This document shows positions 19,309 through 56,139 of a stretch of 64,000 nt of DNA, one piece after another (position 1 is the stretch's first letter; each line of letters begins with the position of its first letter). The position numbers and the translations under genes were made by a program. This stretch comes from Schmidtea nova (Eukaryota): the NCBI GenBank assembly GCA_044892505.1, contig CM097882.1, positions 135,036,001 through 135,100,000 on the forward strand, given 5' to 3'. The notes under the pieces were generated by a model. The model did not search any database. It was given only the letters and a program-made list of their open reading frames with translations, and was not told the DNA's origin.

Positions 19309-22300
19309 GATACAAAGCTCTATGCGAATCATTTCAATGAAATTTTAAATGAAAATTACAATAGAGAGGAGTGTGTGATAGCCATAAAAAATCCTCGCTA
19401 TGTCACTATGGCTTATATTTCCAAGTAAACTTTGCTAAACTTTTATCTTAATCTCACCGAAATCATAAAGTATAACTGAAGAGCAAGCCAGTGAATTAGA
19501 ACTGACATTGCCAACCGATAAAACAATCACATCGGATTCTGACGACACTTTAAATGGAACGGACGACCTTTCTGAGATCAGTTTAATGTCTTTACCAGAA
19601 GAGAAGCAAACGAATAACAACAGGAAAATCGAAAGTGTCACTTTTGATAAAAAATATACATCTTCCTATCATCTCTATCTGAATGAATATTCAATCAAAC
19701 CGATGGTACAGACTGTAACCATAATAAAACCGAATCCTTTTACCGCCGAAGCCACAACAGATACGCAACTCATAGTAATTATAACTAATTACAAGTTAAT
19801 TTTAATTTTAATATGAATTAATGATTCAGAAAATTGAGTTGGAGGGTATTGAAACGATAATTATTAGAAAATCTTTCAAAGGAAGTGAAAATGACAAAAC
19901 AATAATTTATGGAATAATCAATGAATTTGGAGAGATTCGAAGTAAAATATATTTTTTCAGTTTCATATATTTTATGTGAACAGATATTTCCCAAGCAATT
20001 AATGAGAACATTTTACATGTGAAAGACGAATCGTTTTTTAATGGACAATCCGGAGAAGAAATAACTTGGGAAAATGCGTTTAGGGAAAACTATTTACTTA
20101 CAATTGATATTCCAGAAAATATATTGACAATGGAGAACATTAAATGTCTTCTGGCTGACCAGCTTCATTTGGATTTGCCCTTCCGAAATAAGGTAATATA
20201 TAAGCATTTCCACACGAGTATCCGCATAAATAAATAAATATATTTAATTAAGATATTTTTCCAAGACCTCCAAATAAGCGAGATTATAATTTGTAGCGCA
20301 ATATCGGAAAGGGAAAATTTCCGAACAATTATTATTGGCTGGCAAGGTCAAATTGGTGACGAAATTTTGAGTTAATACTATCTCATTTAGATTTTATAAT
20401 GATATGTCTGTTTCAGGTATTGAGGAGGCAATTGAAGAAAAGTTGATCAATGTGGAATATCAGACTTGTAGATGTGATCGAGAAAATAAAGATGAAATGA
20501 GTTGGAGAAACGCAATAGAAGAGAAAGTAATGATTGCCTGCGAAATCCGTAAAGACATGATGACAGCGGAATATGTGAAATGCCTAATAGAAAGCAACAT
20601 AAATGAATATATAAATACGGATGACATAGAAATCCTAGGAGCAGTTGATACATCGGATAATAAATTATTGGAAACGAATGAAGCGGTTGATAGGAAAGTA
20701 TTAGATTTGAATGGGCATTTATTTACGGATGAATTGAGCAATTGTGTGATGGGATTAAGGCAAGCAATTGATAATGGATTTGTATTGGCAAAGAAAAAGG
20801 ATGTTGATTGTGAATTACACCGAGTGCTTGTAGGGTCAGTGAAGGTAGGTAAAGGTCAAAATGAAATGAGCTTAGAAGAAGCAATAAAAGCAAAAGTGAT
20901 TGATCAATTAGAAAACGTATACAAAATAGAAGAGGAAAATGTAGAGATGCGAATAATGGATGCGATAATGTTGGGAATGATAAATATTGGAGAGAAAACG
21001 GAAGGAGAAGAATTAAGTTGTAAATCATTTGCAATTGTACAAAGAAAACCGAGCGATCCAGAAATAGCAGAATTATGTGAATATTCACCAAATAAAGCAG
21101 TGAATGTGAAGATCTTGTGCAAGGCCATTGAATGTGATTGCATGAATGAATTTGTGATTTGTGATGATGTGAAAGAAAGTATTGCGAAAAGCATATTCAA
21201 GAATCGTTTGGAATTAGATCCAATGATTTGTGATGTCGGTGAAGAAAAGAAAAGCATTCTGAAAGGATTTGTGAAAGGTTTGATAGATTGTGAAGAAATG
21301 AAACGGTTGTTAGAAAATGTGAAAGATTTATTTGTAGGAGAAATGTTAGAAAGGTTGGATGAAGATTCAAATGGTAAAGAAATCATTGAAGCGTTGAACA
21401 GTGCCGACATGAATTATCGGCTGGCGGAGATATTAATAATTGATGAAAAGGATTCCACGATAGAAAGCGTATCAAATATTGATGAGGGCGACGAGAACAA
21501 GAAATATAAAACAAAGATTAACGTTGATGAATTATTGAAAAATCTTAATCAATTGAAATGTTTTGATAGATTTGGAATGGACACGATTGAAACTGCAGTA
21601 ATTGGAAAGAAAGAAGATAGAAAGGAAGAGTTCGAGATGCCGATATTTGAATCAGTAATGAATGGGATGTTTAATTTGGACGAGGTGGAAATATTTGATG
21701 AGAAAGGAAGAGAAATGTGTTCAATGATTGAAAGTGTCTCACGAGGACTGATTGATGTGAAGGCAGCAGAAAGTATTTTGGATTGCTTAGAATCGCTGAG
21801 CTTTGAAGAACTAATAAAAGCTGGAATATTTGACATGGGAAATAATTGTTTTGATAAAACGTTGTCACTGGAAGATGCAATTGAAGAGGATTTGTTGAGG
21901 TCAGAAGTTGTATATTTGAATTTGTGTGAGGAGAATAAATTAATAAATTTGAGTAAAATGATTGAATGTGGAATGTTGAACGCTTCAGAAAATAAAGTGA
22001 AGATAGAGAAAAGAAATGGGGAAATAGTGGAAATGAAATTGAATGAAGCACTGAAGGAAGAAAACGGAATATTGTCAAGTGTTGTGAATAGTGAAGAAAT
22101 GAAAAAACAGTTTCCAAGAACGATAAAGTCTTTATTAGATAATCGGATAATAAACAAATATATGAATATTATTTTTGAAGAATCTGAAATAAAAGAAATG
22201 GAGATAAATGATGCTTTAGAGCAAAGCTTGATAAGCGAAGAGTGTTCCGTGTATTATGATGGGAAAGCAGCGGCCGTTTCATACTGCGGAGATAAAGATA

Positions 22301-22606
22301 TAATGAATCTACTAAATCTGTTGAATGAGTTGTCTAAATTCCTCAAGGAATATTTATTTGCTTCCAATTATAATAAAGATGATAAAATACTTTTTCAAGT
22401 AAATGTTGATCATTTGTGTCTAAAACTATTTTTTACTCTGATAAATTAAGATTTTGAGAGAAAAAATTGAAAATCAATTAAGAAAAGATAATAAAATCAT
22501 ACAAAAAGTTGGTGAGATCTTAAATTCAGATCTGAAAAATGATGTGAAACCTGAAATAAGAAATCTCAAATTAAAATATGATGAAGTAGACGAATTAATG
22601 AATGAA
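19309..22606 (+). CDS. Plectin/plakin-repeat-like protein, module 1: exons 19309-19424, 19471-19774, 19830-19941, 19984-20192, 20253-20370, 20417-22398, 22451-22606
   Basis: All introns are GT-AG and 42-60 nt, and the frame stays open through them. Recurring plectin-repeat-like motifs: SIEEAIEEKLI, GEEITWENAF, SLEEAIKAKVID, SMIESVSRGLIDVKAAESILD, SLEDAIEEDLL. The last exon is coiled-coil-like (ILREKIENQ...KYDEVDELMNE). Confidence 0.8.
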
Positions 22607-55402: not shown

Positions 55403-56139
55403 GTTTGTTCGATAATTATTATTTATCAGTAATACTCTAAATGAATTAATACTACTTAAATTGAACGTATTTTCCTAATGAACATCTTGATTCACTGAAC
55501 ACATTTTATACATTTCGATTTCTGTATTGCGACACCTTCTTAAAATGATGATGTTACTCTTTATTTAAAAGTAGACACAAATTTCCTAAAAAAACATTTT
55601 AAATTGAGAACTGCTAAAGTATTGCAAAACAATTTTAGCCGTTCTATAAAAATTATTTCCTACATAAAAGCATAAAAATGACACAGATCGCAATAAATAT
55701 AACATTTATGGTTATTTGAACTTATAACAAATCTTTTTACAAACTTTTGTTGACAATTTTTTATATATTTAAAAAATCTTAATATCATAATTAATAAGAC
55801 TTTAGATCTACTATTATTAAATATATTATTTTTGATAAATTAAAAATATTGAAATAACTAAAAGAAAGACCATCTTCTTAAATAATTTTTATAATATATC
55901 TTGCAGGTCAGCTAAATCTTCAGACGATAAGTAAATTTAATAATATGATCATATATATATATAGAATGGGTTAATATTTTTATATTTATGTTGAGAATGA
56001 AAATATTTTTTAAATTATGTTTATGTAGAGTTATAGTAGGCTGTGTGATAGAGATTTGTGTTGTGGGAGAAGTTGTAGTGCCCGATTTATGTTCGGACAG
56101 TCGGGGTGTCTGCTGTATATTTGTGTGCTTGCGCGCGTG

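Follow-up and report, generated by a model that had tools for sequence, protein, structure and literature searches.

In epiplakin (EPPK1), whose repeats lie in a single exon, the last five domains in human, or the last eight in mouse, are reportedly almost identical together with their linkers. As a general mechanism, non-allelic homologous recombination (NAHR) between paralogous segments duplicates the DNA that lies between them. Epiplakin is a plakin made solely of plakin repeat domains (PMC5979291). In the abalone gene for VERL, the egg receptor for sperm lysin, concerted evolution keeps repeats 3-22 of an array of 22 homogeneous, and repeats 1 and 2 evolve on their own (PMC2704960); intragenic concerted evolution of coding repeats has also been described for the spidroin and filaggrin/hornerin genes (PMC3563967, PMC5225520, PMC6280949). 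Here we analysed a stretch of 64,000 nucleotides (nt) of the Schmidtea nova genome (GenBank assembly GCA_044892505.1, contig CM097882.1, positions 135,036,001 to 135,100,000 of the forward strand), hereafter the window, which carries part of a putative, very large modular gene encoding plectin-type repeats. Blocks of near-identity lie inside otherwise strongly diverged modules of this gene, and we consider it very probable that the mosaic arose by intragenic concerted evolution through gene conversion, together with one very recent unequal crossover.

Near-identical tracts in diverged modules

An earlier, sequence-only reading of the window had described five modules that share a near-identical 707-bp core in their large exons. 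The count was right only in part: a search of the whole 1.25-Gb genome found nine core copies in total, all in one 70-kb locus and none elsewhere, four of them past the window end (at window-equivalent positions 64362, 74164, 81044 and 88977). With the neighbouring DNA added, all nine modules, termed M1 to M9, were compared. Each is predicted to consist of four exons, a to d, with tiny introns between them (see below). Self-BLAST of the window and sliding-window alignment reproduced every coordinate of the earlier description. The core at 20530-21236/21258 matched its copies at 26863, 33198, 40721 and 53298 with 98.6-100% identity. In M3 the match stops at 33904, the first private changes falling at 33905-33911, and M1 and M2 match M4 and M5 up to 22119, 42310 and 54887, right after the AGA codon of a KQFPR motif; M9 loses identity at the identical codon. 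The 3′ ends past this codon had been called unrelated; the match is indeed lost there, but the ends still align at the protein level (nonsynonymous divergence, dN, 0.6-0.8) and share a YCG motif. M4 and M5 proved to be alike only in their tract, as described, with 98.6% identity over 40461/40484-42950 versus 53038/53061-55526. The accompanying statement that their flanks show no visible similarity held for the long introns, between which nothing was detected (blastn, word size 7, E ≤ 1e-5), but not for the 69-nt exons, which are homologous with 58% nucleotide identity.

Tract extents (Table 1) were measured against a consensus of M5-M8. The left edge in M5-M9 lies between 53011 and 53016, at the exon b acceptor, and the right ends fall 18, 100, 250 and about 300 nt past exon d. 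The edges vary by pair: M7 and M8 are identical back to 73673, 231 nt further left, and M5 and M9 have variants of the intron between exons a and b in common. Outside the tracts, M1 and M3 match the other modules at 56-62% in exon b, and the four types match one another at 42-53% in exon d. In M3, the remainder of exon c (113 nt on the 5′ side of the core and 1,174 nt on its 3′ side) is homologous but diverged, its synonymous divergence (dS) being saturated, and the long introns show no detectable sharing except in the immediate exon flanks.

The dS estimated by the Nei-Gojobori method was 0.007-0.046 inside the tracts and about 50-fold or more higher outside them, within single exons. The segments outside the tracts (the pre-core, C and D segments of M3, and segment D of M1 and M9) gave a proportion of synonymous differences (pS) of 0.66-0.78 and a dN of 0.48-0.82. 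Within the tracts, identity in the two tiny introns (51 nt and 53 nt) and in the initial 100-370 nt of the long intron is 97-100%, as high as in the exons, while coding exon a, 45 nt upstream of the tract, is 74-81% identical among M5-M9 and 45-64% identical between types, including the comparison with modules 2-4. Because tract introns match like exons and the upstream exon a does not, selection and a simple recent duplication can be ruled out. Two-sided patches with diverged homologous flanks were found in M3 (33198-33904), M1 (20417-22119) and M4 (40484-42926), and therefore do not come from a single crossover. There was no sign of GC-biased conversion in the GC content of third codon positions (0.30-0.33 in tracts, 0.27-0.41 in native segments).

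The boundaries were also sought in contigs from four short-read runs of a single study, which are collinear with the introns and hence derived from DNA. In every run, contig ends and starts fall precisely on 33198 and 33904 (or 33926). The contigs that adjoin the core (1,228 nt and 1,408-1,525 nt) show 0-1 differences from the assembly, the upstream sequence of other modules is seen as a loose contig end at 33198, and the k-mer depth of the core contig is 4.8-9.3 times that of the M3-specific contig. Because the contigs break at these positions and the core depth is high, the tract boundaries and the multi-copy state belong to the reads and not to polishing. Collapse or mis-polishing between paralogous exons, which had been named as the outcome that would overturn the earlier reading, thus found no counterpart at the M3 boundaries, and mis-polishing is unlikely.

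Reticulation among the modules

The single variants inside the tracts were compared over the 1,703 nt common to M1 and M4-M9, which contain 54 variable sites, 25 of them informative. The four-gamete test was failed by 186 of 300 informative site pairs, and the minimum number of recombination events (Rmin) was 12 in 1.7 kb. In 300 simulations on the neighbour-joining tree, with branch lengths scaled up 1.3-fold (giving a mean of 88 variable sites versus the 54 observed), the number of failing pairs had a mean of 1.6 and a maximum of 17. Adjacent sites were compatible in 15 of 24 cases, above the value for shuffled order (p = 0.009). Mosaic runs are visible in M9, which reads as M8 over 54113-54335, as M1 and M4 over 54441-54461, and as M6 at 54475-54506 and 54878-54884. 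This pattern of variants fits the outcome expected from repeated short conversion tracts.

Taken together, the direct observations (the mosaic with its boundaries, the contrast at synonymous sites, the reticulation and the boundaries in the reads) support the proposal of the sequence-only reading that old modules of one gene are being re-homogenised in sharp, exon-centred tracts, with concerted evolution and shuffling of modules, as do the tract introns and the two-sided patches. The modules would be old duplicates, with synonymous sites that are saturated in every part not overwritten. Misaligned modules would repeatedly have been copied into one another in a non-reciprocal manner, leaving one contiguous overwritten block in each. 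This block would extend from exon b to a little beyond exon d in M5-M8, likewise but from inside exon b in M4, from exon b to the KQFPR codon in M9, and from the first base of exon c to the same codon in M1, and it would comprise the 707-bp core alone in M3. Tracts would end where earlier similarity breaks down, either at the edge of an intron or on reaching the 3′ segment, which is strongly diverged. M2 would have been added very recently by a single reciprocal event, an unequal crossover in the shared core between M1 and M3, and short exchanges may still be shuffling single variants among the modules.

Two tract edges coincide with splice acceptors, that of M1 with the first base of exon c and that of M5-M9 with the first base of exon b. 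These edges and the codon edge shared by several modules are best explained by tracts stopping where prior similarity collapses. That the edges are enforced barriers, not accidents of single events, seems to us rather improbable. With such barriers, the 3′ segment and exon d could form a position-specific connector kept distinct in the first, third and last modules, with conversions that cross into it being purged. A partly processed transcript serving as the template is a less likely alternative for the edges. If the barriers or the transcript template were real, the array would be a natural system showing where conversion is tolerated inside a protein.

Origin of module 2

M1 and M2 differ by one mismatch in the whole 6,333-bp unit (20592/26925), and the intron is duplicated at 100% identity. 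M2 carries the M3 state at 26925 and the M1 state from the next diagnostic site, 27018, onwards; the read contigs show alternative letters for both diagnostic sites, at 33260 and 33353. M2 thus reads as an M3/M1 chimera, apparently formed by an unequal crossover between cores that duplicated the whole unit. The identity of M1 and M2 is that of a whole-unit duplication, unlike the exon-centred conversion tracts. A perfect 219-bp tandem duplication in the long intron is present in both copies of the 6.3-kb unit (25157-25594 and 31492-31929), and therefore predates the proposed crossover.

None of the six N runs in Table 1 touches an inferred exon, and no conclusion drawn here spans any of them. 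The flanks of the five runs in the duplicated unit are collinear with the other copy (offsets 6333, 6331, 6335 and 6335), so that the order and orientation around these runs hold and their lengths alone are uncertain. The sixth run, at 36115-36274, has no paralogous copy with which its continuity could be compared.

Weighing the alternatives

Several points weigh against our interpretation. Splicing and the status of the array as one gene are deduced from DNA sequence, and homogenisation is judged within one genome. The four read sets possibly include the libraries behind the assembly, and contigs of short reads do not show which 5′ flank belongs with which 3′ flank on the two sides of the 707-bp core. 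Among 98-99% identical copies, the placement of single variants could be partly scrambled by polishing, and a homoplasy-type test over a five-site neighbourhood was not significant (p = 0.12). For M2, the k-mer depth of sequence shared by M2 and M3 relative to M3-only sequence was 1.0-1.8 across runs and contigs, contig depth not being equal to copy number, and the extra copy is neither confirmed nor refuted by it.

An assembly artefact (collapse, mis-polishing or a repeat loop in the graph walked once too often) is an unlikely source of M2, and we find it hardly credible as the cause of the mosaic as a whole. It would account for the single base that separates M1 from M2 over 6.3 kb, for a depth ratio below the expected 2 and for the N runs at matching places in both 6.3-kb units, and the cycle from the core through the 3′ part of M1, the intron and the 5′ part of M3 back to the core is a loop that an assembler could walk twice. 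However, the duplication junctions at 26862/26863 and 33197/33198 are without gaps, and each module keeps private variants and a unique intron. Polishing cannot make sequence with saturated synonymous sites match at 99% with single-base boundaries; moreover, the contigs of all four runs give both M3 boundaries with almost unchanged flanks, and the depth of the core relative to unique sequence comes near the nine assembled copies.

It is very unlikely that the identity merely reflects young copies, with a unit of about 3 kb recently amplified in tandem, its introns then invaded by transposons, and no conversion involved. Transposons do lie in the long introns, such as the Penelope copy that is 97% identical to the one in the window and ends 9 nt before the M7 flank; the 663-bp intronic repeat has 99% identical copies genome-wide, and the right homology ends are roughly copy-specific, not pair-specific, as amplification would have it. 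Yet exon a and the intron between exons a and b, which adjoin the tract, are 74-89% identical versus 98-100% in the tract, and homology does not resume beyond the putative insertions. The repeat in intron 4 is 78-87% identical to its genomic copies, hence old, and it is absent from the other introns. Finally, M1, M3, M4 and M9 are mosaics with saturated divergence beside the tract, and no single tree accommodates all the variant sites. A third possibility, that strong purifying selection on the shared nucleotide sequence (through protein, codon usage or RNA structure) has kept the copies alike with no exchange, can safely be set aside. Plectin-type repeats are recognisable in the product of the core, and parts of it are conserved in relatives; in the tracts, however, synonymous sites resemble each other as closely as replacement sites do and outside they are saturated, the tiny introns and the intron flank are equally identical, and the nearest relative has 44% protein identity over the shared segment, which is therefore not unusually constrained.

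Gene model and module anatomy

We infer one very large gene on the plus strand, which starts about 19.5 kb into the window, continues for at least 27 kb beyond its end and is composed of a truncated leading module, M0, followed by the nine modules. The spliced model would comprise about 7,100 codons in a single frame throughout, and its reading as one gene rests on conserved splice sites and phases. In the nine-module alignment, a four-exon unit is delimited by AG/GT pairs kept across the aligned modules, and sites and phases are kept in all of them. The exons measure 69 nt (a), 118 nt (b; 121 nt in M4), 1,982, 1,994 or 1,997 nt (c, which is entered in phase 1) and 156-168 nt (d), and the introns that separate them 45 nt, 51 nt and about 50 nt, in this order. 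Overall, the tiny introns inside the units measure 45-55 nt, and each unit is followed by a transposon-loaded long intron of 4-10 kb. M1 is without exon a. The module lengths (2,256, 2,325, 2,340, 2,355, 2,352 and 2,349 nt) are all multiples of 3. M0 showed 24-27% identity to the module proteins in tblastn. On the minus strand, the modules also contain open frames of 168-261 residues, which were rejected as genes, being the antisense of a sense strand rich in E, K, I and N.

A metagenome contig (L009; 2,413 bp, GC 0.29) encodes a product 44% identical to that of exon c and carries a module that belongs to this gene family but comes from a related animal. Its layout is exon b, tiny intron, exon c, tiny intron and exon d, with matching phases, and this match in layout and tiny introns supports the four-exon model. 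Further environmental fragments (P0002, P0003) showed 45-48% protein identity.

Table 1. Features of the module array. Positions are those of the window unless a flanking sequence beyond it (L001, L002, L004) is named.
Feature	Position	Strand	Remarks
M0, truncated leading module	19830..20192	+	exon-b-like 19830-19941 and short exon-c-like ~19984-20192; fully diverged from other modules
M1 exon b, 118 nt	20253..20370	+	AG..GT; 61% identical to modules 5-9
M1 large exon c, 1982 nt	20417..22398	+	phase 1 to 0; tract from 20413/20417 to 22119; native, diverged from 22120
M1 exon d, 156 nt	22451..22606	+	50-53% identical to other types
M2 exon a	26472-26540	+	
M2 exon b	26583-26700	+	
M2 large exon c, 1982 nt	26750..28731	+	
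M2 exon d	28784-28939	+	
M3 exon a, 69 nt; exon b, 118 nt	32807-32875; 32918-33035	+	native, 45-58% identical to others
M3 large exon c, 1994 nt	33085..35078	+	homogenised only 33198-33904
M3 exon d, 159 nt	35136..35294	+	diverged
M4 exon a, 69 nt	40322..40390	+	outside tract, 54-64% identical to others
M4 exon b; exon c; exon d	40436-40556; 40608-42604; 42658-42825	+	
M5 exon a, 69 nt	52902..52970	+	just outside tract; 74-81% identity among modules 5-9
M5 exon b; exon c; exon d	53016-53133; 53185-55181; 55235-55402	+	
M6 start (exon a)	63968..64000	+	modules 6-9 run on past window
Exon c of modules 6-9	L001:249-2245; L004:51-2047; L004:6931-8927; L002:4864-6860		flanking sequences beyond window
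M1 high-identity block	20413-22119		first base of exon c to KQFPR codon
M2 high-identity block	26863-28452		
M3 high-identity block, 707-bp two-sided patch	33198..33904	+	core common to all nine modules; 99.6% identical to M5-8 consensus
M4 high-identity tract	40484..42926	+	99.3% identical; starts inside exon b; covers exons c, d, both tiny introns, ~100 nt of long intron
M5 high-identity tract	53016..55653	+	exons b, c, d, two tiny introns, up to 250 nt of long intron
M5-M8 high-identity block			exon b acceptor to 18-300 nt past exon d
M9 high-identity block			exon b to KQFPR codon as in M1
6,333-bp tandem unit, 2.1 copies	20530..33926	+	20530-26862, 26863-33197, first 707-729 bp of third; 99.75-100% identical including intron
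Putative crossover junction interval of M2, 93 bp	26925..27018	+	diagnostic sites at M5-equivalent 53360, 53453
N run in long intron 1	22675..22803		begins 69 nt past M1 exon d end 22606; nearest to any inferred exon
Other N runs	23198-23342; 24245-24390; 29529-29677; 30580-30725; 36115-36274		all intronic

Protein family

Homology searches were run exon by exon. The Pfam Plectin repeat (PF00681) was hit by exon c of M3 with 29.2 bits and by M5 with 21.3 bits (cutoff 20.5), M1 scoring slightly under the cutoff with 19.5 bits. An exhaustive protein search with phmmer retrieved 89 relatives, including giant proteins of 2,800-6,200 residues with 10-20 matched stretches each; a word-indexed, length-limited protein search with the M5 open frame had given no match. 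Two of the giant proteins (3,500-4,400 residues; E = 6.6e-41 and 1e-36, with 18-19 stretches each) carry Plectin repeats at E = 1e-254 and 1e-278. The identity of the module product to giant plectin-repeat proteins is 24-28%, i.e. remote. The nearest relative (P0001) scored 40 bits for the Plectin repeat, parts of the shared core are conserved in relatives, and another phmmer match (P0009) gave E = 5e-11 to 2e-7 against the repeat domains of plectin, desmoplakin and envoplakin whose structures are solved. The nearest clusters in the Atlas were all Plectin (scores 0.83-0.88), which we treat as a lead only.

Comparison with structures gave little. A direct sequence search of solved structures found no match, and a profile search of them with the module gave desmoplakin alone, at E = 0.74. 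An AlphaFold model built from a 7-row alignment had a mean predicted local distance difference test (pLDDT) score of 48, with hairpin-helix units only in residues 66-126 and 390-560, which is too poor to establish the plakin repeat domain fold (a repeated beta-hairpin plus two helices), and a fold search with this model gave a best Z of 5.4 and no meaningful match. From the repeat hits and the relatives, the predicted product appears to be a divergent plectin/plakin-repeat protein, presumably functioning as a linker that binds cytoskeletal filaments.

Mobile elements and repeats around the gene

The DNA of the window is AT-rich (GC 0.2-0.38) and contains many mobile elements. The genome has three very large sequences, of which the one carrying the window measures 612 Mb; this karyotype-like picture and the Penelope and hAT elements described below would suit a planarian. 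Upstream of the window, from 20 kb to 5.8 kb before its start (L007 and L008), satellite repeats with a period of about 374 bp make up an array of at least 14 kb; the copies are 90-99% identical and form higher-order blocks of about 5.1-5.5 kb. Within the window, a Penelope-like retroelement on the minus strand (6055-8652) has an intact open frame of 865 residues ending in a GIY-YIG-type motif and is flanked by repeats (5898-6462 and 8896-9464); its partial copy in the intron before M7 (L001:8084-9664), 97% identical, stops 9 nt short of the conserved flank. At 9511-11172, units of 115-131 bp that are 98-100% identical alternate with N runs of 161-333, forming a tandem array in which part of each unit is N. 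Frames of an hAT-type transposase (16269-18572, plus strand; DUF4371, E = 5e-21) are spread over at least three reading frames directly upstream of the first recognisable exons.

Repeats also occur in the long introns. A 663-bp repeat (36275-36937), located right after the N run at 36115-36274, has dozens of 93-99% identical copies in all three large sequences and is thus a young non-autonomous element, probably an active one. The M4-M5 intron (intron 4) contains an older dispersed repeat of about 2.5 kb (46289-48780), 78-87% identical to more than 40 scored copies; a query with the entire 9.9-kb intron gave over 7,000 first-look candidates, of which these copies are a scored subset. In the intron after M5, an integrase-like retroelement frame on the minus strand (57001-57588) is flanked by an inverted repeat (56474-56609 versus 57746-57879, 93%), and sequence located 0.4-1.7 kb upstream of the window start matches 57966-59243 with 86% identity. 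Downstream of M9 (L002:7924 to L005, window-equivalent 91924-102063), a 3-kb inverted repeat with 92% identity encloses short tandem repeat arrays.

Comparison with described systems

The phenomenon is a known one, ordinary though clear concerted evolution, and involves no new mechanism. The locus is an unusually legible case, in which a saturated background, the 69-nt exon of intermediate identity (74-81%) and recent tracts (98-100%) stand side by side; these layers can be read next to each other because the modules are separated by long unrelated introns and have been overwritten only partly. The resolution reaches single-base break points and a crossover window of 93 bp. In practical terms, gene predictors and short-read mappers will mis-handle a plectin-repeat gene of about 7,100 codons, and the copy number at modules 1-3 may vary between individuals.

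M2 resembles the products of NAHR in being a putative chimera, with its junction in a 93-bp window of a 707-bp shared block and with the whole intervening unit duplicated, but the recombining repeats here are exon segments of the same gene, giving an additional module that is in frame. The spidroin and filaggrin/hornerin genes are like the present gene in that long coding repeats are homogenised within a gene and copy number is variable; their repeats are contiguous in one exon, whereas conversion here would have acted across introns of several kb, and its boundaries and the unconverted background remain visible. The protein shares with epiplakin the plakin repeats, the absence of any other recognised domain in the part examined, and successive repeats that are near-identical in nucleotides. 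In contrast to epiplakin, each module here has its own exons and long introns, the similarity to vertebrate plakin repeats is remote, and orthology is not claimed. VERL, from an unrelated protein family, is similar in its large tandem coding repeats, with interior units at least 95-99% identical via unequal crossover and/or gene conversion and with edge units that escape. The units of the S. nova gene, unlike those of VERL, are split into four exons with 4-10 kb of unrelated intron between them, and its edge modules escape homogenisation only in part, as mosaics with sharp internal breaks.

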